Assembly: GCF_046119375.1 (NCBI RefSeq)
Contig: NW_027362764.1
Location: 166,904,001 to 166,968,000, forward strand
Source of the DNA: Phyllobates terribilis
Taxonomy: Eukaryota
Reading direction: 5' to 3'
Length of the DNA stretch: 64,000 nucleotides
Shown here: piece after piece, positions 3,481 through 62,176 of the stretch
Numbering within the stretch: position 1 is the first letter of the stretch
How the letters are laid out: each line of letters opens with the position of its first letter
Program-made: the position numbers and the translations under genes
The notes under the pieces: generated by a model
What the model was told of the DNA's origin: nothing
The model's input: only the letters and a program-made list of their open reading frames with translations
The model's database searches: none

Positions 3481-4030
3481 TTGGGTCAATAGGAGGTTTT
3501 TCCCCATTTGTTAGGTTCTCTCCAGTATTGGCAGCAAAGGCAGCGTCGTTACTTTGCTTCTCTCTGTCAGCAGGAGAGCCACAAGCATAATCAGACAAAG
3601 ACAGAGTGTGAGCATCAAACGTGGTACAGTCCCCCCTCCTGCCTGAGAGAGGCTCAGGTTTAATACCGTAGTGCCTGCTTGAGGATAAGCCTGGGAACGA
3701 CAATGATCCGGCCATGGGCTCCAGCCAGGAGCGCATATACCTGCCATCTGAGGCTGCTATGGGTGCCTGGTGGTGCACATAAGGGTGGTACACGCTGGAG
3801 ACATTACTGGCAGGCTGAGGATGGTGCACTGGATTCCAGGGGCTGCTAAACATGGACGATTTAGATTGAAAGCTGCATGGAGTGTACTCAGGGTGTTCAG
3901 TCCCCAGTGCAGCCTGTCTTGTTGGTTGAGCTAAGGAGCCAGAAGCAAACCTGGACTGCACCAGCTCCTCACCCTCATGGATCAGGAACGAGTCCACATA
4001 ATAATTGCTCAGAGTCCCAGAAGTCGTCAT
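3481..4030 (-). CDS. HOXA9: Homeobox protein Hox-A9, coding exon 1
   Basis: ATG at 4030 gives MTTSGTLSNYYVDSFL...DGRYMRSWLEP...YGIKPEPL...EKPPIDP. Donor A|GTAAGT at 3481/3480, phase 1. 550 nt + 239 nt of exon 2 = 789 nt, 262 aa. Confidence 0.97.
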
Positions 4031-4144
4031 TGCTATGATGAGAGCAGGACCTGCTGAAATTATGAAACTGCAGATTTCATGTAACAACTTGGTCCTACAA
4101 AGAAGTACAGTCACCTAATAAGTTGCAGGCAGGACTGGCCTCCT

Positions 4145-4167: not shown

Positions 4168-5487
4168 TCAGCAGCAGAACAATAAGGAATAAATCAGTCC
4201 GCAGGCTATTAATGGCTCACTGTTTTCCAGTCATCATTTTTATAGCAAAGCCATATGTTTTTATGCAAAAGGATATCGAAGTTATACAATATTGTCCCCT
4301 TTAATTGTGGCCAAGTCAGATTAAAAGATCCAAATTTCCTCCTTTTCTACCATTGCAGGGACTATTTTACATCATTATTAATCACACAGTAGGATGTAGG
4401 TGTTCTCTACAGTCCTTCATCGAAAAGCAGCCCTAGACACATAGATATAAAGTAAAGACCCATCCCCTCCATACACACAGGCATCAGTGCAGTAGATGGG
4501 ATTTAATATGTTTCACTTGCGCTGCTTACAAGCAGTTGTTACATTTTACTGTTGAGCTTAGGAAGGGAATAGTAAAGTGGTATAGATCCAGCCAGAAGCT
4601 GCAGTAAAATGCAAATCTCTAATAAGTCTCCATAGTGCTGTTCTAGACACACACAGACTGCCTGCAAATAGGGCAATCAGCCTAATCCTGAGAATGCACA
4701 ACAGCACTCAGAAAGAAAGCGTCTATTCCTCCTCTACTTTCCTCTAGAATTGATGTTTATAAATTAGTATATTTTATATTCCACAGGGCAGTATATTACC
4801 CACACAGCAGTCAGTATTTACAGGTATATTCACATTCACCCCTACATGCGAATCATTTACATCTGATTCGGAAGAATGTGGTATATAAACCCTAAACAAA
4901 GGGAACAATTACTGAACACTTCTACCATTATTTTCATTGATATTATCATCTAAATATTAAAAACGATAATAATAATTTTAGGAAGACTCACTGTTAGGAA
5001 TACTGGTCGAGACAAAGGAATATCCTCACAGTTATTATTATTATTAGTATAATTTGTAAAATAATAAATATTATAATATTGTTGTTTATTCCTCTAACAG
5101 ATTTTGAACTATACCTGACTACAACTTCAGTCTTTGTGAGGAACTGGGTAGGAAAGATTTACAGGGTAATCCGGTGCAATAAAGTAACGTTAATAAAACA
5201 GACCACAAGTGAGGGTAGAGAACACACTGAGGAAGGAAAATTAGGGCGTGGATTCGTGAGAACAATTGTTCTACATGCATGAAACCTTTATTACGGTTTG
5301 TAGAAATGTGATAAGGTTCGTAAATTCATAATCTGAACAGTATCAGTTATAGTAATTGTGTAGCTGGGAAATCAACATAAAGAAAGGTGAAATAATGATA
5401 AAATGGTAATGGCGGATGGTTACATTGTTTCAGATGAACAGCACAAGCATTAGATCAAGTCCATTGTTATGAGTCCAGCATTATGTC

Positions 5488-21570: not shown

Positions 21571-21720
21571 GGGAAATTGACAAGCTGAGACTATGGGCCC
21601 TTTTCTTTGTAGCCATCTCAAGGGAAGCAACAGATCGTCACTTGCTCTAGCTTCATAGAGGCATGTAATGTGCAGTGGAACTCAGGCTTTCTACACATCT
21701 GCCTCCTCCAGAGCCATGCC

Positions 21721-23017
21721 GGGGGAGCACTGAGGCTGAGGAAGAACTGAGGCTGAAGGAACACTGAGGCTGAAGGAACACTAAGGCTGGGGGAGCACTG
21801 AGGCAGAGAAAGCACTGAGGCTGAGTGAGCACTGAGGCTGGGTGAGCACTGAGGCTGAAGGAGCACTGAGGCTGAGTGAGCACTGAGGCTGGGTGAGCAC
21901 TGAGGCTGAAGGAGCACTGAGGCTGAGGGTGCACTGAGGCTGAGTGAGCACTGAGGCTGGGTGAGCACTGAGGCTGAAGGAGCACTGAGGCTGAGAGCAC
22001 TGAGGCTGGGTGAGCACTGAGGCTGAAGGAGCACTGAGGCTGAGGGTGCACTGAGACTGAGGGAGCACTGAGACTCGGAGAGCACTGAGGCTGAGGGTAC
22101 TCTGAGGCTGAGTATGCACTGAGACTGGGGGAGCACTGAAGATGAGGGTGCACTGAGGCTAGGAGAGCGCTAAAGTTGAGGGAGCACTGAGAATAAGGGT
22201 GCACTGAGGCTGGGGGAGCACTGAGACAAAGAGTACAGTGAGACTGAGAGTTGCACTAAGGCTGCGGGTGCACTGAGGCTGAGGGAGCACTGATGCTGAG
22301 GGAGAACTGAGGCTGAGTCTGCACTGAGGCTGAGGGAGCACTGAGGCTGAGTCTGCACTGAGGCTGAGGGAGCACTGAGGCTGAGTCTGCACTGAGGCTG
22401 AGGGAGCACTGAGGCTGAGTCTGCACTGAGGCTGAGGGAGCAATGAGGCTGAGTCTGCACTGAGGCTGAGGGAGCCCTGAGGCTGAGTCTGCACTGAGGC
22501 TGAGGGAGCCCTGAGGCTGAGTCTGCGCTTAGGCTGAGGGAGCAATGAGGCTGAGTCTGCACTGAGGCTGAGGGAGCAATGAGGCTGGGGTAGAACTGAG
22601 GCTGAGTGTACACCGAGGCTGAAGCTGCACTGAGGCTGAGGGAGCAATGAGGCTGGGGGAGAACTGAGGCTGAGTCTACACTGAGGCTGAAGCTGCACTG
22701 AGGCTGAGGGAGCACAGAGGCTGAGTCTGCACTGAGGTTAAGGATGCGCCAAGGCTGAGGATGCACTGAGGCTGAGGGAGTACGCAGGCTGAGGATGCAC
22801 TGAGGCTGACTCTACCCTGAGATTGGGGTGCACTGAGGCTGAGTCTGCACTGATGTTGAGGATACACAGAGACTGAGTCTGCACGGAGGCTGACTTTACC
22901 CTAAGATTAGGATGCACTGAGATTAGGATGCACTGAGGTTGAGAATTCACTGAGGATGAGGATGCATTGAGGCTGAGTCTACACTGAGGTTGAGGATACA
23001 CTGAGGCTGAGTCTGCA
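21721..23017. repeat. 17-bp minisatellite GCACTGAGGCTG(N5), roughly 75 units
   Basis: Units such as gcactgaggctgagtga, ...gggtga, ...gaagga, ...gagtct, ...gaggga. Alternating 34-bp dimers in the middle, decaying at both ends. Confidence 0.95.
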
Positions 23018-25031
23018 ATGGGCTTCATTGCGCAAATCACACATCCCTTATATGGGGACATATCCAATGCAAAATAAGGTCTTTGTCTGTATCCACCCAT
23101 TCACTTCGATATTCCTGGATGAACCTTAGATGTATGTGTCAACTAACACTGGGCACACAGTGTACATCTATGTAATTAGATTCTTCTGTATTGTAGCATA
23201 CTACTGTATATGAAATCAAATACAATTCCATATGCTGCTTAACGTAGTGCTGCCTTGTGAACTGTGGGGGGAAAGAATGTGCATTGCCTCTAAAACAGAA
23301 GGCATCATGTCCCCTCCCCCATCTTGACTGCTGCAAACCTTAGTGAAGCTCACTATTTCCTTACTATGGTCACATCTGATCGTTTTACACTGCATTAGAC
23401 CATAATGCCTCAATACTCCACACAAAGCCCACAATGCTCGTGGATTATATATGCATATATGTGTATATGTATATATATGTAGAAACATCTGCATCGTCAT
23501 GCGTATCATCACAATATACAGATGGCTACATGAATAGTTAGATGGATAAATGGATGGATGAATGGATAGATAGGTCTCCTTTGACTGTGAAACAAAGGCG
23601 CCACCATAGCCAACCCTTGCCCCGCCTCTGAGAAGGAAAACAAATTCTTACACTTGTATTGAGGCTTTTAAGACTATAATTGAAGTCGGCGCGTCAAGGA
23701 GAAGTGAGCAGAGCTCTAGACTGACCTGCGGTTTTATGGCACATTTGGCAGTCAACTTCAGCCTGTGTCACAGCAGACATGGCCTGGCCAGGGGCTCACA
23801 GGAGACGCCACCTACATGCAGCCATGACCTCCTCTCCACATGTTACATGCAATCACTGATTACACTGTGTGCTCTCTGAAAGGTTTGTATGATGGTAACC
23901 ATTGCTTTTGTTTCCATAGAATAGTGTTTGTGTGTATACACTTATATGTTTAATTGTGCAAATAGAATNNNNNNNNNNNNNNNNNNNNNNNNNNNNNNNN
24001 NNNNNNNNNNNNNNNNNNNNNNNNNNNNNNNNNNNNNNNNNNNNNNNNNNNNNNNNNNNNNNNNNNNNNNNNNNNNNNNNNNNNNNNNNNNNNNNNNNNN
24101 NNNNNNNNNNNNNTGTGCCCCCTGGCAAATCGTAGGGGAAAATAGAGAAACCATACATTGAGTATGATCATGCACCATATATACGCACCTCTTCACCGCC
24201 AGGTCTTGTAGGATGCATAAGGACAGACATTTGCAGATGCTCTAGCGAAAAAAAACTTCCAACAATGAGACATCTTTATGGCGAAAAAAAAAATAGTTTT
24301 GTTATCGTGTATTTGACCTTAACCATAGACCGCGGCACTAAATAATGGCTAGTCTGGCCTTGGAGCTGGGTTATTCCTCAGATCAGTAATGCTGCATCTC
24401 CTCATGTGCCCAGAGATACAGAATACATCTTCTTTAACATCCTTAGGACAAGAATCAATATGACGGTACATGCAGACTGCAGCTTGTGGTTTAAGTTTCA
24501 GGGTCAAATCTGATTCTCGTTTTGTGAGTTTTCTTTGTTTAGCATTATTATCACCAAATCAAAATTCCGGCTCCATCACCCACTGCAGCGACAAAGACTT
24601 TTCGTGCACAACCCAACACAAACAGCTTTACATTTCATTACATTACAAGTGTAGCAAAAGTGCCCTCCAAGCCCCACTAAAAATATGTATTATTGAGCAA
24701 GCATATACAGACACACAGATCTACAAGTGTCTCTTACAACAAAAAACGACAAAACTCACATTGCAATAATTGTCACTATATAGTGTTGTCGTTGCTGTTG
24801 TTTTTGCTGTTGTTGATGATGAGGATGATGATGTCAACAATAAAAAGCAGAAGAATACAAAATATCACAATAGAAAACATAATATAATGATTACCTACAT
24901 TTATAAATTTTGACAGGACTGTTGTATTAAGTATAGATTATATTATGGGAGTAATGGGAGAAAATTCTAAAGAAAAATGGTAAATGTTTAGATAAAGATT
25001 GGTAATATTATTAATAACAACAGCAGCAACA

Positions 25032-30822: not shown

Positions 30823-31067
30823 TTAGCTAGTGGTCTTCAGTTTATTGATGACTTTTTTTTCTTTGACTCTCCTGTTCTGAAACCAAATAGTGACCTGTCT
30901 TTCTGACAGGTTGGTGGTTGCTGATATCCTGCGCCTTTTGTCCTTAGTGATAAATTTATTTGTCGCATATTCCCTTTCCAGTTCTTTCAGTTGCACTTTA
31001 GTGTAAGGAACTCGTTTTTTTCTGCCTCGTCTGTACGAATTGGCATCTGAAGGATGGGAAACCACGT
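30823..31067 (-). CDS. HOXA13: Homeobox protein Hox-A13, coding exon 2 (homeodomain)
   Basis: Acceptor ctttccctttcag|AC. Translates (D)[80 protein letters not shown]. Confidence 0.97.
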
Positions 31068-32034
31068 CTGAAAGGGAAAGCACAGGTCACTGAGATATGA
31101 TGCTGCCTGACATCAACACAGTCATGCATGAAGTTATATACATTGTACGTAGAAAAATGTATGCTGCATTTAAATGTATGTAAATCTATCTATCTGCATT
31201 AGTGTGGGTGTATGTAAATGTGTGTGTGTTTTTGTGTCTCTCTATATATTATAAGTATATTATGTATATATATACAATTTTTATATCACTCAATAAAACA
31301 AATATGTTATGTATCAACAATATTAATCTGTAGCAGAATATGAGCTAAAATTGCATATGCAGTGGAAAAGGGAAACTGCATAACTTAAATTGTTCATTGT
31401 TCAACATTTATATATAGATAGATAGATAGATTTTTCTCTCTCTCTATATACACATATATATATATAAATATATATTCACAATGATCTCATGCACATAAAA
31501 TTATGTGTATCTGTATATACATATATTTCTACAAAGATGTAAATGCAGAAAAATATTATTGTTTATATATGACATCATTGTGAATATATTATATAACATT
31601 ATATGGTGATTTATAATAAACGGGAAATAGATAGATGATAGACATCAAATTTCAAATTATATCATGTCTTTTATTTTTTTTTTGTGTGTAATATAAAATG
31701 CATGTAGGATACAAATCAGGATAAATAAGATATAGATGCTGTTGGTAGAAAAAAAAGGAAAGAAATAGAGAGAGAAAGAAAAATATGATAGATTGATAAT
31801 NNNNNNNNNNNNNNNNNNNNNNNNNNNNNNNNNNNNNNNNNNNNNNNNNNNNNNNNNNNNNNNNNNNNNNNNNNNNNNNNNNNNNNNNNNNNNNNNNNNN
31901 NNNNNNNNNNNNNNNNNNNNNNNNNNNNNNNNNNNNNNNNAAATAGATATGATAGACAGATATGATAGATAATATTGATTGCAAATAAAAGGAATACATT
32001 CTGCATTAAAGAATATAATTATTTGATGTGTTAC

Positions 32035-32686
32035 CCGGTAAAGTGGATTTCCATAGGTGGGTTGGCTGGCTTTGATCCTTGGCACAGTAAACCTGCCCAT
32101 TCCAGCCATTTGTAATAGCCCAGGGTTGGTAGCTATCCATTGACAGTAATGGTTCATGCCTCGGTTCACCAGGTGCCCCAATGGTGGACACTACAGGCAT
32201 ATCCAGATAGCCTGGTACTGGCTGGTAAGGGGCTGTGGCATATCCCTGGTAAAAAGCAAACTCCTTGGCCCTAGAAGGAAAGTCTTCTCCAGCAGAGACT
32301 GATGTCTCCATATACTTGTCTGCAAAGGAGGAGGGCTGCGAGCAGGACTTGATGGTGCTGTGATGGCTCATTCTACAGGGGTAATAGCTGCTGCCAAAGT
32401 AGCCATAGGGCAGGCTGGCACTAGAGGAGCTCTGCACCGCAGAGCAGGGGCTGCACTGCTTGCCAGACTCCGCGATGCCCGACACTGGCACCTCACTGGA
32501 GGAGTAGGCACCGCTGGGGGCCAGAGATGCGGCAGCCGGGTGCCCCATCAGGTTCCTGCATTGGTTCGCTGCGAAGTTGCTGCCTGCGAATCCTTCCATG
32601 TTCTTATTAATATCATCCAAGCTGTTGTCGTAGAGGAACATGAGCGGCTCGGGCCAGCGGGGATGGAGCAGCACGGAGGCTGTCAT
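32035..32686 (-). CDS. HOXA13: Homeobox protein Hox-A13, coding exon 1
   Basis: [21 protein letters not shown]...AANQCRNLM...[12 protein letters not shown]...QPVPGYLD...WNGQVYC...LWKSTLP. Donor G|GTAACA at 32035/32034, phase 1. No long poly-Ala tracts. 652 + 245 nt = 298 aa. Confidence 0.96.
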
Positions 32687-32805: not shown

Positions 32806-35667
32806 ATGCAAAGCAGCTGCCAGACCCCAGAGCTGAGCTGCAGATAATTTACTTTTTTTCCTCCTTTCTTCTTCCTCTTCCCTTATATAAGTCAGCATTC
32901 AGTGCATCATCAATCCAGGCCCATATATGTATATATAGATAGATTTTTTAGACTATCGTGCAATGTTTTAATACATGATCCATTCTACAACTTTTGCACT
33001 TATCTTTCCACACGCAGGGAGGGCACCCTATGGTTATAAAATATTGCCATGGCATCATTCCTCTGCGCTCATCATTTTATTACATTAATGCGTATATAAT
33101 AACAATAATAAAACATGTCATCCAAATATAACACGCAATCCAACTTAATATATAGATGATGTGTTTATAGGGAGGAAACCCCCCAAAATATGTCACCATA
33201 ACATACAGACAGGTAAGAGAAGTAGAAATATTAAAAATTCAATTTAAAAACAAACAGCCTTTTTTTTACAATGAAAATAAGAGGTTAATGGAGAAATTAG
33301 ATTGAATGAGTTCAGGAAAAGCTAAAAAAAGACAACAACTAAAAAACAAGAAAATATGTCTCAACAAAAATATTGAGGTAATTAAACAGAATAGAAAAGG
33401 ATAGTAGAATTATCGCTTTGTATANNNNNNNNNNNNNNNNNNNNNNNNNNNNNNNNNNNNNNNNNNNNNNNNNNNNNNNNNNNNNNNNNNNNNNNNNNNN
33501 NNNNNNNNNNNNNNNNNNNNNNNNNNNNNNNNNNNNNNNNNNNNNNNNNNNNNNNNNNNNNNNNNNNNNNNNNNNNNNNNNNNNNNNNNNNNNNNNNNNN
33601 NNNNNNNNNNNNNNNNNNNNNNNNNNNNNNNNNNNNNNNNNNNNNNNNNNNNNNNNNNNNNNNNNNNNNNNNNNNNNNNNNNNNNNNNNNNNNNNNNNNN
33701 NNNNNNNNNNNNNNNNNNNNNNNNNNNNNNNNNNNNNNNNNNNNNNNNNNNNNNNNNNNNNNNNNNNNNNNNNNNNNNNNNNNNNNNNNNNNNNNNNNNN
33801 NNNNNNNNNNNNNNNNNNNNNNNNNNNNNNNNNNNNNNNNNNNCAAAACTACAACAGTACACCTTGCATTCCCTTGAAATGAATTGGGCAGATTGATTGC
33901 ACTGAATCACTGTATATTGATATCTATTTCGATTCAGATCCTTGCACAGAAAATGTAAAATAATATTCAAAAATTAAGTCGGCCTATTATTACTATGACA
34001 CATTTTCTATAAAAACAAATCTACTGGTTGGCTGCACACAATGAGGTGACTATGAGACACTACATGATAGCTGGGAGACACTGAGGATCTCTCCGAGCAC
34101 TAAGCTAATGTACCAGACACCCAGTATACACAGCACTGAGCACAGGGCAACTGTGCATAAGTGCTGAGCAGGGACACAAGCCAAGGTCAAGTTGAAAGTG
34201 CTTGTCTAGCCAAAAGTGCTCTGCCAATTAAGCCCTGGAGTCTCTTACTACCAGAAGAAGCCGTGTCCACCGAGGTCATGTACTAAAACCTCTTATATGT
34301 GATGGCGCACGGTGTGGTCATCATGTCCTAAAGTAGCAAAATACGTTCATTCATCATCACAACCCATTGAGCTGCACTTCACAAAAAGAAAAATAAGATA
34401 TAGAATCATTCTCTATATTTTATTTCTGACATGTTAAATATATGTACATACACCTATACAAAACACACACACACACACACCCACCCACACCCACCCACAC
34501 CCACACCCACACACACACACACACATATATATAGTATATATATGTACACACTCGTATATATAAACTATAAATACATATATAAAGTATATACGCATATATG
34601 TAATTATATATACGCGCACGTGTACATATTTGTATACACACATCATACACACACATATATACGATATATATTAAGCATATAGCTATAGATATAGATACAC
34701 ACATACATATATATGTACATATGTATGCACACATATGTGTGTATATTTTACAAATATACATTTGTTTTCCTAAACATCTGAGTGAAAAGCATTGGGAAAC
34801 TGAAATTTCCGTACCTGATACATTTAACAATTTGATTTGTCATTTATTGTAAATTCCAATCTACAGAAAATATGACTGGCGGACATAGAAAGACAAGCCC
34901 TACTCGGATAATGATTACCATATTCAATGAGATCATTTCTTCCCAGGGAAGTCATTAGTAACAGAGTTATGTAATGAGCAGCTGGTAAACTTTTGATATA
35001 CAAACAAATATACAATTAGCACTTTTCCATTTTTTGCACATGTCTGTGAAAAATGGAAATGTTTTCACATTATTTAAAGAATTTTTTTATTGACCAATTA
35101 AAAGACATCTTGTCACTACTTATACTTTATACTGACTATATTTCATGTCATAGTCATGGTTATTGATATTATTAGTAACAACTAAAGCAACAAAACTATT
35201 ATCTATCTATCTGTATTTTGTCTTTGGGCAGCTAATTATACTACTACTAATAATAATAATAATCATGAGCAGCATTATATTTGCATACAGTGATAACGTT
35301 TGTCATTGAATGATATATAAGTATATCAAATAATAAATCCTCAATGCAATCCTATAACATAAATACAATAAGTGTATGAGACTCTTCCCACACAATGTGT
35401 AGATTTTGTTGTTTTAAATGTTCATTTGCTCCAACATTTAGCAGCATGCATTAAGCAACTATGCCAAATCATATGCCCTTGACTGGCTGATTAATTAAAA
35501 TGTATCTTTAGGTCATAGCATATTATATAGGCCATTTATGATATCCTTGTGTAAGCAGAGTTCTCCATAATATTGTGCTGCGAGGTATTCCGTAAGGTAA
35601 AGAATATAATTAATGAAGGGGGGGAAATCTCTTTGCTTTGTACAAATGGTGTCTACACACGAGGTAA

Positions 35668-35793
35668 TTAAACAGTGTGACACTTCCCCGTTGCCCCAGA
35701 CCAGAGATTCCCACTAATATGTGTCTCTCCTTGTAGACAGCCTGCAAAACACTGGCTGCTGTGCCTGGAGCTGTACTGGTACCAGTCCGGCAT
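35668..35793 (-). pseudogene. HOXA14: HoxA14-like pseudogene exon 3 (recognition helix remnant)
   Basis: ttgtgtcttttgcacag|ATG CCG GAC TGG TAC CAG TAC = MPDWYQY. W is the fourth codon after a phase-0 acceptor, as expected for V45-K-I-W48-F-Q-N51. TGGTACCAGTAC differs from TGGTTCCAGAAC at 2 of 12 nt. Confidence 0.65.
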
Positions 35794-36431
35794 CTGTGCA
35801 AAAGACACAAGGTAAAACTTTAATATACATCTTTACTAGAAATAAATATATTCACTGTACAAAATCATGGGCTTTCCATAGACAATAGAAAAATAGCATA
35901 GTTATAGTAACTGACTATTTCGAGGTGTATTAATATATATATATACATCTCGAAATAGTCAGTATATATACATACATACACATATTTTATATACAACTAT
36001 CTATTTGTCTATCTGTATGTAATACATATATAAATATTTATATATCTATTTATATCTCTGTATATATGAAGATAGATAAATAGATATTTTACACTGATTG
36101 AAACATTTGTCAGGAATTATTCTGATCTTTCTTTCTTTTTTTCTTTCTCATCTTTTTTTTTTTCTGCCCATTTCTTATCTTCTTTCTTTTTTTTTCTGTC
36201 CCTTTATCTTTTTTTCTGCCCCTTTTCTTATCTTTCATTCTTTCTTCCTTCCTTTCTTTCTTTCTTTCCTTCTTTCTTTCCCTTTCTTATCTTNNNNNNN
36301 NNNNNNNNNNNNNNNNNNNNNNNNNNNNNNNNNNNNNNNNNNNNNNNNNNNNNNNNNNNNNNNNNNNNNNNNNNNNNNNNNNNNNNNNNNNNNNNNNNNN
36401 NNNNNNNNNNNNNNNNNNNNNNAGCACACCC

Positions 36432-36622
36432 ATTCATTCCTCTGAAGTTCAAGTTTAACAGCCATGTTTTGTCTTACCCCTGGTGTAAGGAAGTGGTTTT
36501 CTTCAAAGGCTTTTCTCCTGCTCTGCAATTTGGGACCCTTTGCTTTGTCTGGCCTGAGACGTTAGTGTTTTTGACTAGGATGGCTGGATACCTTTTGGAA
36601 ACAAAGGGCTGGGGGATCAGGA
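36432..36622 (-). pseudogene. HOXA14: HoxA14-like pseudogene exon 2 (homeodomain helices 1-2)
   Basis: Acceptor attctttcag| at 36623, phase 1. Reads QTKQRV(P)[14-nt deletion]QIAEQEK[+1 A]AFEENHFLTPGVRQNMAVKLEL[-1]E. Residues fall in homeodomain register: Q12, E15, E17, F20, N23, F25, L26, T27, R31, L38, L40. Confidence 0.88.
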
Positions 36623-38044
36623 CTGAAAGAATGTGGTATGGTTGAGTAATTATTGTCCCACTAGATGTTATCAAGTGAATTCCCATTTAGATAATACTAA
36701 TTGTACATTAATACTTGCTACACAAGAAAATTATGATCTGACAGCTGCCATTAAATGATTACATACAAATATGAGACCCACAAAGGCAAACTTTTAGACA
36801 GAAGTTTAGATTTTAGTGGAATTTTTCACTATGTGATATTCATATTCCTATACTATCAGATATTGCCCATGTTTCTGTAGGTATCAGGCATTGACTTTTT
36901 TTTATATATATATATAATAAGCATCATAATGTCTTCCTGACACAACAATGCACTTTAAAATCCCAAACTGAGATCAGGCTGAGAAAGGAAAGGGTCAATT
37001 AGATTCAATTCTTTTACCTTCATCCTTCCATTCAAGCAATTCCTTCAATATAAAAAAGCTGTATAAAGCATCCAGACTTTTAATGGGTTTTAATGTAATT
37101 TAAGGCAGAGAAGTGCTTTTAAAATATCAGTAACCAACCATTTCTTTGTGTTCAAGGGCTGCAGCTACCTGATCTAGAATGCTGCAGCCCACATTTCGTG
37201 TCAAGGGTCTCACCATTAGAAGGAACTGGCACACAACCTTATTTTTAGCTATGGTTATCTAATTTCTGCATACACCAGATAGGATTTTGATGCTTCAGCA
37301 CTAAGTTCTATGTCACATGATTTTGGGATTTTGGCTGGAAACCTTACCCTAATTTCAGTTCAATTTATGGAAAGGTGTGATATATTTATATAGTTAAAGA
37401 TGTATGCACACACACAGACATACTATAGTATGTAATAATTCCTACATATGGCGGTCACAATGGAATCTCCTTTATATTAATGTGTTATTATTATCATTCA
37501 GCTTATTCACTAGTAGTTTTATTTACTGATCACACAATTTCAGGACTCTGCTCTTTTATATTATGGAGTCATACTTGGCATAAATATTAATGATAATATT
37601 TCTGTTATTCCTTTATAACCTCATCAATTTATTAAATCACTTAATAACAAGACAAACAATCTAGCTTTGGCTTTGCTGTGGTTTTCAAAATCATTAAATA
37701 GGGGAAATAACTGAATATATTTACAATGGGTAAACAAGTCATAATAATAATAATAACTGTGTATAGAAAACACACGAGGAATCATAAGTTCTGTATCACT
37801 GAGAATAACAATATATAGCATTAGCAAGCAAATGACAGGGCTGTAAAATACTATGAGTTTGTATGTTTCAGGGAAACCTTGTGTATATAGTATATAGTGT
37901 AAATATCTAACTAGAAAAGGGATCAATCATTTGTGTTAACTTGCTCAGAATAATCCCTTTGCATTAATTAGAAATAAATGAAACATCCAGAGAACAACAC
38001 TATTATTTGCTCCCTCAATATTTAAACTAATCCGTGTGTGTGAC

Positions 38045-38420: not shown

Positions 38421-39846
38421 GCATTGTAGAACTAGTGCAGTTGCCTAAACTTTCCACTAGATGTCTTCACAGATAATAGTATTAAATTGATTGTGTAATT
38501 AGCAGATTGGGACTTTAATATGGTGATAATGCTTTTTTTCCAATAATCTTTTCCTATAGACACTACATTCTGTCATGAAAGTTGCTGAAATGTACAAGAT
38601 ATAGCGATATATGGTATTTAGAAGGATGCAAGCTCTGTTATCACATACTATGTGCTTAAATAGCACTGCCTGCTGCATACTCCTTTTGGATTAATGTTTA
38701 ATCTGCTCAAGTCAGGGACACTCTGCTTGTAAATGCATCAACTTTGACATTCATTCTATTTTACTACTGAGGAGAGTTCAAGGTTTTGCTTTCCAGCTAA
38801 ATTCAACATTTTTGTCTGCCATTAGGGAAAGACACAAGTGTATGAACATACACATTAAATNNNNNNNNNNNNNNNNNNNNNNNNNNNNNNNNNNNNNNNN
38901 NNNNNNNNNNNNNNNNNNNNNNNNNNNNNNNNNNNNNNNNNNNNNNNNNNNNNNNNNNNNNNNNNNNNNNNNNNNNNNNNNNNNNNNNNNNNNNNNNNNN
39001 NNNNNNNNNNNNNNNNNNNNNNNNNNNNNNNNNNNNNNNNNNNNNNNNNNNNNNNNNNNNNNNNNNNNNNNNNNNNNNNNNNNNNNNNNNNNNNNNNNGC
39101 AGAAGATGGTGGTTGCTATCAGATATACTTTGATCATTGGCCTTCCTACAAATACATAATTAAGGATTGCAGCGCTCCTGCATTATTCCAGTTAGTATAG
39201 ATTATTCACCCATATGCCATAGGATCTATTTTTATATGATAAAATAATTAACCAGAAAGACATTTTAAGGCCTGTTCACATCACTCTAATAGTGCTTCAT
39301 GCTTTTTTTTTCCCCACTGAACTTGATACATAGAAAGCTTACCGTTTTTAACAGCATGGGTTTAGAAAACTTGTAATATTGGATCCTGATACAAATGGTG
39401 ACAACTATATTAAGAATATTTTTTACACCTCATATCAATGATTGAGATGCATTAATATTGTTTAGAGAACATACCTGTCAGAGTAACCAGGGAGAGCTGT
39501 CACCAACCTGTTCTCTAAGGGAATAATGACATCTCAGAATCCATTACGAACCAAAAGTGGCAAAAACGCCCGTTTTTTTTATATAACTAATACAAAGTTT
39601 TTCTGTCCTTTGGGGTTTGTGTCTATTTAAATCAATGGGAGGATCAGATGGAAAGGATATGTCTCTGTAACCAGATAACCCAGACTGATCGGAATCGCTC
39701 TTTCTATTATTACTTTTGAGTGACAGCCATTTTAAGGGATTAAATATCTAATGAATTAAAAATATAATTTGCTAATAATGTTTATCCATATATTATATAT
39801 CCTTTATCTATATAAAATATAGTTATATTATATTTATATACACACA

Positions 39847-43375: not shown

Positions 43376-43956
43376 TAAACATTTTATCCAATAGTATTTT
43401 TTTCATTGCAGCTAAAGAAGTTAAAAATAATATAAAAGAAAGTAAAAACTGATAAAGCAGATGAAGTACAAAAATTCGAAAGATAAATAAGCATAGTAAC
43501 TCATAGTACAAGCATATGAACAATAGTCCTATCAACATGATCTGCTTTGTGCATAAATAATCAATTAGCTAATCAATAGATACAACATGCCTCTTACAGA
43601 GGCTACGTTTACATAAGCGTTTTTCTTTTTTGTCTACGTGTTCTCTGTGTGATAAACGGACAGCACAAGGACAGCACAGGGACAGCACAGGGACAGCACA
43701 GGGACAGCACAGGGACAGCACAAGGACAGCACAGGGACAGCACAAGGACAGCACAAGGACAGCACAGGGACAGCACAAGGACAGCACAGGGACAGCACAG
43801 GGACAGCACAAGGACAGCACAGGGACAGCACAGGGACAGCACAAGGACAGCACAGGGACAGCACAAGGACAACACAGAGACACATGTGAATCAATGTGCT
43901 AGTTCTCACAAATGCTTTCCTACAAGGATTGCTAGACTGTGCCCCCAAAAAAATTG
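43376..43956 (+). repeat. Local direct duplication, copy 1 (contains an 11-bp GACAGCACAGG/AAG array at about 43659-43875)
   Basis: Starts taaacattttatccaatag and ends tagactgtgccc..aaattg. Matches 44569-45009 with substitutions and small indels. Confidence 0.9.
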
Positions 43957-43968
43957 GATCAGGTTATT

Positions 43969-44011
43969 CCCCTTGAAGAAGGTGCTGTGAGCACCGAAAC
44001 GTGCGTAGGGG
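43969..44011 (+). ncRNA. Minimal type I hammerhead ribozyme motif (Penelope-like element type)
   Basis: CCCC-UUGAAGA-A-GGUGCU/GUG/AGCACC-GAAAC-GUGC-GUA^-GGGG. Stem I 4 bp, stem II 6 bp, self-complementary stem III ACGUGCGU. AATAAA follows at 44440. Confidence 0.65.
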
Positions 44012-60358: not shown

Positions 60359-62176
60359 TTAAAAACGTGGTTCTGTGTGGAAGATTTTAAAGCAGTCAGT
60401 GACGCATAAGGCTGGCAATGATGGGCATTGTGGGCAATAGTAGCGGGTATCACGCCTCATTCCTCTCTTAGTACATACCCGACATCTTTTCTGGGGGTTC
60501 CTTCTTGTTTCCGTTGCTGGAATAAGTGCAATAAAATGTCGCTCAGTGAGTCTTTTCACATCCTCAGATTCTAATGGATGAGCGGGGCTAACACTTTGAA
60601 AGACAAGATTTTCAATTACCTTTTCTTGATAATCAAGAAAAGGATCTGAATTTCCTGCTTTTTTGTACAACACAAAAGAATTGTATGTGGCCACCTGAAA
60701 CAAATAAATAACCAACTTTTTATACCAGGTATAGGACTTTCTTGATACCTGGTATGGCTGTAGCACCTGGTCTGCAAGGTCCACACCCCCCATGTGTTTG
60801 TTGTAGTCAATGACTGACACAGGTTTTTGCTTCGGAGTGGTGGATCCTAGTTCTACAGTGGCCCTTGTGGCATCTGTGTGGATCGAGCTGAGGACAAAAA
60901 TATCCCTCTTATCCCTATATTTCAGGGCAAGCAGCTCTCCGTTGCGTACAGCCCCTGACTGCCCCTTTTGAAACTTTTGGTTGACCAATGGTTGTGGAAA
61001 CCCCTGACGGTTTTTACGGATGGTCCCACAAGCCCCGATGTTGTGTTCAACCAGACTTTTAAATAGGGGTATGCTGGTGTAATAATTGTCCACATATAGA
61101 TTGTAGCCTTTTTGAAAAAATGGACTTATCAGCTCCCAAACAATTTTTCCAGATGTCCCCAGATAAGTAGGGCATCCTGGTGGGTTTAGTTGGCTATCTT
61201 TCCCCTCATATATGCGAAAAGCGGATGTGTATCCGGTTGAACTTTCGCACATTTTATAGAGCTTTATTCCAAACCTTGCCCTTTTAGATGGGATAAATTG
61301 CTTGAGGTGCAGTCTTCCTTTGAATTTTACACGGGACTCGTCTATAGAAATATTTTGTGTTGGGGTGTAGAGGCTTAAGAATTTTTCTGACAAATTTTCA
61401 ATGATGGGTCTAATTTTATATAACCTGTCATGTTCTGGGGCATTTCTGGGCAGGCATTGACTATTGTCGTTAAAATGCCAAAACCGCATGAGCATTTCAT
61501 AACGGGTCCTAGGCAGAATGACTGAAAACATAGGGGTGGCTTGAACAGGGTGGTTGGACCAGTAGGATCGAATGCTCGGTTTTTTAACAAGCCCCATGGC
61601 AAATGTAAGTCCTAAAAATTTTTTTATTTCCGGGACATTAGTTGGTGTCCATAAATTTGCCCTAGCATAGTAAGATCGGGGATTCTGGCTTATGAATTGG
61701 GACGCGTATAAATTTGTTTGCACGACAATATGCTCTAGCAAGCTGTCTGTAAAAAACAAATTAAAAAAATGAACTGGTCCAAAATCTTCCACCTCCACAT
61801 TTATACCAGGAATGGCGTTGAAATCAGGGCTGAATGGAGCAGCCGAATCTGAAGCCTCCCATCTGGGAAATGCTATATCACGTGGCAACGCCCCTTGTAC
61901 ACTGGCGTGCGCCAATTCACTAGTAGCAGGGACAGCGCTTGTACTGGGCAGTGTTCCCTGATTTGGAGACGTTTCTCCAGTAGCGCTATTTGCCCCTATT
62001 GCTCTACTGGTCCTTGGGCTTGAGGATGGAACAGAATCACTGCTCATTTCTGGGCTCTCAGTGTCGCCGCTACTAAAGCCCTCAAAATCCATATCTCCAT
62101 CTGAGATTGCGCTGTCATCAGTGTCAGAACACAGCAGGGCATACACCTCCTCTGCGGTATAAGTCTGACGGGCCAT
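60359..62176 (-). CDS. piggyBac transposase (PGBD4-like), 605 aa, uninterrupted
   Basis: Catalytic motifs SIDES, YVDNYYTS and GGVDLADQ. C-terminal Cys/His-rich domain CRVC...YCPQCPSLPALCVTDCFKIFH. Start context aaaATGg. Confidence 0.93.
   Translation of the reverse strand: MARQTYTAEEVYALLCSDTDDSAISDGDMDFEGFSSGDTESPEMSSDSVPSSSPRTSRAIGANSATGETSPNQGTLPSTSAVPATSELAHASVQGALPRDIAFPRWEASDSAAPFSPDFNAIPGINVEVEDFGPVHFFNLFFTDSLLEHIVVQTNLYASQFISQNPRSYYARANLWTPTNVPEIKKFLGLTFAMGLVKKPSIRSYWSNHPVQATPMFSVILPRTRYEMLMRFWHFNDNSQCLPRNAPEHDRLYKIRPIIENLSEKFLSLYTPTQNISIDESRVKFKGRLHLKQFIPSKRARFGIKLYKMCESSTGYTSAFRIYEGKDSQLNPPGCPTYLGTSGKIVWELISPFFQKGYNLYVDNYYTSIPLFKSLVEHNIGACGTIRKNRQGFPQPLVNQKFQKGQSGAVRNGELLALKYRDKRDIFVLSSIHTDATRATVELGSTTPKQKPVSVIDYNKHMGGVDLADQVLQPYQVSRKSYTWYKKLVIYLFQVATYNSFVLYKKAGNSDPFLDYQEKVIENLVFQSVSPAHPLESEDVKRLTERHFIALIPATETRRNPQKRCRVCTKRGMRRDTRYYCPQCPSLPALCVTDCFKIFHTEPRF

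Follow-up and report, generated by a model that had tools for sequence, protein, structure and literature searches.

HoxA14 was reportedly described in lungfish and coelacanth by Powers and Amemiya in 2004. Genes of paralog group 14 (PG14) are diagnosed by three exons, by the motif WFQNQR instead of WFQNRR, and by an intron that splits the homeobox after codon 44 (PMC3707753, PMC3509897). According to reviews and the lungfish genome report, tetrapods have lost HoxA14 (PMC3707753, PMC7875771), and a PCR survey missed the gene in a caecilian (PMC3038165). This view, which was also the premise of the original prediction for the DNA analyzed here, is out of date: intact Hoxa14 was described in four caecilians in 2024, together with pseudogenes in turtles and crocodilians (PMC11600591, Mol Biol Evol). 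The species sets of that study include X. tropicalis and a toad, and frogs are without any report there. A full-text literature search, whose reach ended at subscription papers, found no report of HoxA14 or Hox14 in an anuran. Here, a segment of frog DNA at 36434-36591 is described that we hold, with considerable confidence, to be exon 2 of a unitary HoxA14 pseudogene, one that would be kept by selection for a non-protein role, of which a cis-regulatory one is preferred.

Locus and identity of the exon 2 remnant

The window, meaning the whole 64-kb stretch of DNA that was analyzed, carries the posterior HoxA cluster on its minus strand, with the recognition-helix motifs of HoxA9, HoxA10, HoxA11, and HoxA13 at approximately 1889, 9687, 18976, and 30888. 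HoxA13 serves as the synteny anchor. Its exon 1 ORF spans 32006-32686 (minus strand; the 3′ end of the ORF runs past the exon) and its homeobox lies at about 30847-31032 (minus strand). The best database matches of exon 1 are frog HoxA13 proteins (Rhinoderma 97%, Dendropsophus 95%), and the non-coding DNA of the window is 76-87% identical to that of Rhinoderma darwinii, which indicates that the window belongs to another hyloid (neobatrachian) frog. The Evx1 homeobox was not found within the 64-kb window. Several further features were observed. Mammalian HOTTIP is antisense to the Hox genes. A HOTTIP_2-like match (RF02041) at 34144-34278 of the plus strand is also antisense to them, with a sub-threshold score (26.4 bits, E 1.9e-4; gathering score 80), and it coincides with a non-coding element at 34128-34290 that is conserved in all frogs compared and in the caecilian. 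A TA/TG low-complexity tract occupies 34460-34780; the Rfam matches resembling mir-297, mir-466, and mir-3149 at 34535-34776 fall in this low complexity, far under their gathering scores, and were rejected. Minisatellites form long tandem-repeat tracts at 21600-23100 (inside the Hox cluster) and 43570-43990 (upstream), where they give overlapping repetitive ORFs in several frames (SLSAPSASV..., CCPCAVPVLSL...). Finally, an intact ORF of 605 aa for a piggyBac-type transposase (60359-62176, minus strand; Pfam DDE_Tnp_1_7 at 1e-89 plus a zinc finger) is located ~27 kb 5′ of HoxA13.

The HoxA14 exon 2 remnant at 36434-36591 (minus strand) lies 3.75-3.9 kb 5′ of the HoxA13 start codon on the same strand, in agreement with the 3.8 kb originally proposed. 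It consists of a pre-homeodomain stretch with a conserved Trp codon, followed by homeodomain residues 1-44, and it ends at homeodomain codon 44, matching the donor position of the caecilian exon. The first 44 codons of the homeobox and a separate exon 3 reproduce in the window the PG14 split after codon 44. An N block at 36294-36422, directly 3′ of the remnant in the Hox sense, covers the start of the former homeobox intron. The comparison set for frogs comprises nine loci from eight species (Ascaphus, Bombina, Spea, X. laevis, X. tropicalis, Rana, Gastrophryne, and Rhinoderma). In all eight species the remnant is found 3.4-5.7 kb 5′ of HoxA13, and this position is the same in the nine other frog loci and the caecilian.

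The remnant is read in three minus-strand frames: that from 36662 gives ...GQTKQRVP..., that from 36661 gives ...SQIAEQEKSL*, and that from 36660 gives ...RRKAFEENHFLTPGVRQNMAVKLELQRNEWVC. The peptide strings quoted by the original prediction span 36433-36551, and all three are present there. A colinear block of 66 nt, AFEENHFLTPGVRQNMAVKLEL, is found at 36445-36510 (minus strand). The exon had been proposed to open at a phase-1 acceptor; the phase is upheld, in the frame of QIAEQEK, and the location is not, as the cag at 36623-36625 is not orthologous. When the exon is aligned to its intact caecilian counterpart and to Ascaphus, the orthologous phase-1 acceptor AG (aaaag/G, the slash marking the exon boundary) falls at 36592-36593 (minus strand). 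The acceptors of the caecilian and Ascaphus both read ttgcaaacag/G, which puts the ancestral AG at 36593-36592 and the exon start at 36591, and the position of this AG is kept in the aligned frogs. Likewise, the gap of 14 nt suggested for the arm region depends on the alignment, and the net loss relative to Ascaphus, Bombina, and the caecilian is 18 nt. As this net change is divisible by three, a single frame can also be read from the acceptor through to QIAEQEK (...ARQSKGSQIAEQEK). The arm DNA AAG CAA AGG GTC CC resembles AAG AAG AGA GYC CC, with an uncertain gap placement there. A frog-only alignment (A3), which shifts the neobatrachian arm region, was set aside in favor of alignment A1, the 12-mer GGCCAGACAAAG being exactly common with Bombina.

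The identity of the remnant was assessed against true Hox14 sequences, since Pfam is blind to such short, decayed pieces; no Pfam Homeodomain match was obtained for the three pieces of the window or for the peptide in which they are joined by X. In tblastn, the caecilian exon 2 peptide matches 36433-36513 of the window with 18/27 identical residues (E 1.5e-7, 38.9 bits). Shuffling the 9.3-kb upstream region 200 times gave a mean score of 16.4 bits (sd 1.3, maximum 21.2), which places the observed score ~17 sd over these controls. The lungfish HoxA14 protein also aligns with the remnant (17/23, E 1.4e-4), so that the expected similarity to genuine HoxA14 is significant for both queries. True Hox14 proteins were gathered by an exhaustive profile-free search with the caecilian exon, which returned Hox14 of lungfish, sawfish, paddlefish, lamprey, and hagfish; the lungfish protein sits on the same contig as lungfish HoxA13. 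When the X-joined remnant was ranked against 274 homeodomain proteins, the caecilian and lungfish HoxA14 came first (72% over 32 residues), followed by HoxD14 (59-62%), cyclostome Hox14 (47-50%), and then all other homeodomains. The window's own HoxA9-A13 are absent from the 30 best matches.

A maximum likelihood tree of homeodomain positions 1-44, for which the window remnant offers only ~30 usable residues, contains one Hox14 clade with support of 98/99, made up of six Hox14 proteins and four remnants (window, Ascaphus, X. tropicalis, and turtle). The three frog remnants cluster together (83/89). Forcing the window remnant into Hox13 costs 8.9 lnL with a p-AU of 0.05, a borderline value obtained with ~30 usable residues. 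The ranking, the clade, and this cost all agree with the earlier proposal that the segment is closer to PG14 than to Hox13. The assignment to A14 over D14 is not resolved by the tree alone and rests on synteny (linkage to HoxA9-A13) together with a few residues: the remnant has the A14-type EEN, RQ, and AV, versus EKN, RL, and SF in D14, and its E22, Q32, and A35-V36 fit lungfish and caecilian A14, where D14 has K, L, and S-F. It is exceedingly improbable that the segment is instead a chance likeness, a fragment carried by a repeat, or what is left of a different homeobox gene, whether a duplicate of Hox13 or a gene outside the Hox family. The failure of Pfam to see a Homeodomain would suit such a reading; against it stand the distance of the tblastn score from the shuffled controls, the best matches, which are all Hox14, and the PG14 clade. 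A repeat family, which the original prediction had named as a way in which it could fail, is opposed by a segment that is single copy within the window and syntenic in all nine other frog loci, and thus syntenic and single-copy in ten frog loci.

Lesions, exon 3, and the age of the loss

The conserved Trp codon, present in lungfish, sawfish, the caecilian, and most frogs, has changed from TGG to TAG at 36575-36577; this stop is private to the window species, with Rhinoderma retaining TGG. The net 18-nt loss lies between AGACAAAG and CAAATTGCAGAG, within about 36533-36542, and has removed most of the N-terminal arm (RKKRxPYxK). Alignment confirms both of the frameshifts that had been proposed. 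The +1 is an extra A in the run at 36511-36514, and the −1 is one missing C in the T41 codon at 36443-36444, after KLEL. At 36434-36436, TGA replaces Q44. At the site of the ancestral splice donor after codon 44 (36432-36433, minus strand), GT has been retained by the caecilian, Ascaphus, X. tropicalis, and Rhinoderma and the window has AT, such that the exon end now reads TGA then AT versus the ancestral CAG/GT, and the donor is lost. A working homeobox would have an open frame and usable splice sites; what is found is two stops, a +1, a −1, the 18-nt loss, and a donor changed from GT to AT.

A HoxA14 exon 3 remnant, corresponding to the recognition helix and C-terminus, is present at 35700-35793 (minus strand), 640 nt downstream of the exon 2 remnant, with its own acceptor AG (cag at 35794-35796). 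It begins ATG CCG GAC TGG TAC CAG TAC..., or MPDWYQY, versus VKIWFQNQ in the caecilian. At the position of the diagnostic WFQNQR, which is intact in the caecilian, the window reads W-Y-Q-Y-S-S, and Ascaphus keeps the Q (WYHHQS). The decayed helix 3 motif fits an apparent remnant rather than a working PG14 member. Because of the two in-frame stops, the arm loss, the +1 and −1 frameshifts, the lost donor, and the degraded recognition helix, the HoxA14 remnant of the window cannot encode a homeodomain protein. There is next to no likelihood that a working HoxA14 has been made to look broken by assembly errors. The N block does adjoin the exon; however, the independent Rhinoderma assembly has the same 18-nt loss, +1, and −1, the 18-nt loss and −1 recur in Rana and Gastrophryne, lesions are present in every frog assembly, and DNA sequencing runs contain the exact words.

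Conservation extends beyond the two exons. A block directly downstream of the exon 3 remnant, at 35465-35699 (minus strand), represents the former 3′ end or UTR; it is alignable in Ascaphus, X. laevis, Rana, Gastrophryne, and Rhinoderma (70-83%), and in Spea and Bombina only its exon-3-proximal part aligns. A second conserved non-coding block, upstream of the remnant at 38435-38819 (minus strand), is possibly the former HoxA14 promoter region. A tblastn search for exon 1, in which the N-terminal portions of five Hox14 proteins served as queries, showed no homology, the best E being 0.28 across the frogs and the 10-kb caecilian flank. The upstream block holds a CTCF-like motif, CCACTAGATGTC, at 38454-38465 (plus strand), which is kept as CC[A/G]CTAGATGTC in Ascaphus, X. 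laevis, Rana, and Gastrophryne. The pattern has two matches in the window versus 0.12 expected, and the motif may be a boundary element lying 5′ of the HoxA14 remnant.

In the caecilian Rhinatrema bivittatum (locus L001), intact Hoxa14 exons 2 and 3 are located at 3928-4103 and 5149-5244. Exon 2 lies ~6 kb 5′ of HoxA13 (caaacag/GA...HPQTWANKPMPEKKTRKKRAPYNKFQIGELERAFEENRFLTPEVRQNIAVKLGLTERQ/gtaaaa) and matches the Pfam Homeodomain over profile positions 1-43 (E 7e-11); exon 3 follows 1 kb past it (VKIWFQNQRQKEKK...*). These exons show directly that HoxA14 survived into amphibians, as had been proposed from the window. No gene is annotated at the Rhinatrema exons, and exon 1 is absent from the 10 kb examined. 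A Hoxa14 remnant was also observed in the turtle Chelydra serpentina (locus L010, 3013-3141 and 4297-4386): exon 2 retains an open frame of 43 codons (Pfam Homeodomain 3.7e-5), and in exon 3 the Q that marks WFQNQR is replaced by TAG. With an intact gene in the caecilian, the loss in frogs must be independent of the amniote losses.

Shared and private lesions, by which the original prediction advised dating the loss, were compared within frogs. The 18-nt loss and the −1 are common to the four neobatrachians (Rana, Gastrophryne, Rhinoderma, and the window frog), so HoxA14 was dead before crown Neobatrachia; the Trp-to-TAG change is private. Bombina, Spea, and Xenopus each have their own indels in exon 2. 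Ascaphus truei has the least decayed frog copy (locus L005, 5234-5374 and 6222-6302). In its exon 2, which is free of frameshifts, only two stops interrupt the frame, at the conserved Trp codon and at Q12, and the two splice sites survive; its exon 3 reads IKIWYHHQSQKQ. Among the aligned frogs, no frame-breaking exon 2 lesion is common to all. Thus, either the stem lineage took its first hit outside exon 2, in exon 1 or in regulation, or there were several deaths; that coding HoxA14 died several times independently within frogs is a possibility. The replacements E29G, G39E/A, T41P, and F49Y are present in most or all frogs at sites that are constant in other Hox14, and the turtle remnant lacks them. 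As these changes at otherwise constant positions are common to most or all frogs, they suggest that constraint on HoxA14 was relaxed or altered already in stem frogs.

Constraint on the dead exons and its possible basis

Distant frogs can be aligned to one another at no more than five or six short islands in the 10 kb 5′ of HoxA13; one is the exon 2 remnant, and another comprises the exon 3 remnant plus the block downstream of it. In every species pair, the divergence of HoxA13 4-fold sites is 3-13 times that of the remnant core. Between the window and Rhinoderma, exon 2 has 3/158 differences and exon 3 has 1/94, versus 13/98 at HoxA13 4-fold sites (binomial 4.5e-7 and 2.4e-5, respectively) and about 32% divergence in the aligned background, comparisons in which constraint is possibly overestimated through a locally low mutation rate, the GC-richness of the HoxA13 4-fold sites, and the poorly aligned stretches in the background. 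The identity profile has peaks of 95-98% exactly on both remnants versus 40-80% around them. The same pattern is observed between X. laevis and X. tropicalis (remnant 6/154 versus 25%). By these comparisons, the dead HoxA14 exons are under purifying selection in frogs, beyond neutral expectation. The original prediction that the gene decayed slowly or late accounts for its long readability, and it is incomplete, since the dead exons themselves are under purifying selection.

In the 66-nt colinear block, a hand count of the differences between the caecilian and the window gives 12 at third, 3 at second, and 0 at first codon positions. Between the window and Gastrophryne, the hand-counted differences are even by codon position (2, 4, 2), with no third-position excess. 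As the neobatrachian differences are spread evenly over codon positions, the present constraint is not on a protein, and because conservation peaks in species that already share disabling lesions, the DNA is kept by selection for something else. The rate lies below neutral in species whose frame is broken, which is the mark of an exon-derived conserved non-coding element.

A plain HoxA14 pseudogene without any role, readable owing to a late death and/or slow mutation of the Hox cluster, which is how the original prediction saw it, is an unlikely account of these data. It gains from the absence of a frame-breaking exon 2 lesion common to all frog lineages, which allows late and independent deaths, from the 12/3/0 pattern, which indicates long coding constraint on the path between the caecilian and the window, and from the slowly evolving turtles and crocodilians, which keep readable remnants too (PMC11600591). 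However, pairs of species that share lesions differ by 2-4% in the remnant versus 13% at 4-fold sites and 25-32% in the flanks, and between distant frogs the former intron is unalignable whereas the remnant is alignable. The remnant thus probably retains a non-coding role.

On balance, we lean toward the view that both homeobox exons and the 3′ block were kept for >150-200 million years as functional non-coding DNA (enhancer, boundary, or lncRNA exons) working for the HoxA13/Evx1 end of the cluster. An ancestral PG14 gene with three exons and a split homeobox would have stood 5′ of HoxA13 in the sarcopterygian ancestor, and the exon 2 and exon 3 remnants would be what survives of it after the loss in frogs. 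The old exons may have contained cis-regulatory DNA that acts on this end and outlived the coding function. Identities of 96-98% are typical of developmental non-coding elements and unusual for lncRNA exons. Because of this level of identity, and because the region is rich in such elements, we favor putative cis-regulatory DNA in the former exons, with a non-coding transcript as second choice.

A tentative alternative, which we regard as possible, if doubtful, is that a non-coding transcript from the 5′ tip of HoxA (a transcribed pseudogene or an lncRNA) uses the two remnants as exons, the constraint then acting on the RNA or its splicing. Splicing signals speak for it in part: the acceptor AG of both exon 2 and exon 3 is kept in the aligned frogs, a GT donor persists in Ascaphus, X. 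tropicalis, and Rhinoderma, and conservation sets in at the acceptor, whereas the donor of the window is lost (AT). On the RNA side, the remnant has no conserved fold (−0.16 kcal/mol) and no Rfam family matches it, and its 96-98% identity is, as noted, high for lncRNA exons. Known lncRNAs that are fossils of coding genes (PMC5577775) and the HOTTIP_2-like element 2 kb away lend the transcript some plausibility. Putative RNA runs contain 55% of the remnant 31-mers versus 16% of those of the surrounding 3.9 kb; however, the RNA label of these runs is a guess, and they may be capture libraries of conserved elements. Over 36423-36640, small putative-RNA runs contain 25-55% of the remnant 31-mers, and several other organisms contain 55-60%. 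The presence of these 31-mers may reflect either transcription or capture of a conserved element. Cis-regulatory DNA remains the preferred reading, and the dead exons are candidate regulatory or RNA elements of the HoxA13-Evx1 region that are testable in Xenopus. If they have been exapted, the fossil would be an Anura-wide element, Xenopus included.

Comparison with described HoxA14 genes, remnants, and exon-derived elements

The closest described counterparts are the caecilian Hoxa14 and the turtle and crocodilian pseudo-Hoxa14 (PMC11600591), which represent the same gene in the same place with the same three-exon, split-homeobox structure as in the frog. The frog copies are more decayed than the turtle copy, with frameshifts and the arm deletion. 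Protopterus HoxA14 (P0146), with its 72% identity over 32 alignable residues, has the A14-type residues and the intron after codon 44 in common with the remnant. In contrast, the lungfish and coelacanth genes are intact and expressed (PMC3038165; PMC7875771), whereas stops and frameshifts break the frog copy and its helix 3 is degraded. The psi-HoxA14 and psi-HoxB14 of the elephant shark (PMC3707753) are likewise unitary PG14 pseudogenes that still occupy the 5′ end of their Hox clusters. These cartilaginous-fish pseudogenes belong to another lineage, and their loss is independent of that in frogs. We know of no report of above-neutral conservation in them.

Conserved non-coding and lncRNA elements derived from exons (PMC5577775) combine coding ancestry, the lack of a conserved frame, and above-neutral conservation, as does the frog remnant. 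This likeness concerns how the element works and not its family, and the activity of the frog remnant is putative. The HOTTIP lncRNA (Rfam RF02040-RF02043) occupies the same intergenic region at the 5′ tip of HOXA. The HOTTIP-like element is antisense to the Hox genes; unlike it, the frog remnant is in the Hox sense, lies 2.2 kb further 5′, and has no match to the HOTTIP family. Following the 2024 findings in caecilians, turtles, and crocodilians, the frog remnant provides a third data point at the scale of the amphibians. Every frog sampled, from Ascaphus to Rana and including Xenopus, keeps remains of the gene, which provides datable lesions for the order of Hox losses in tetrapods. Remnants of this kind have been published for other tetrapods, and frogs are added here as a new lineage; the strong conservation of the dead exons is unexpected.
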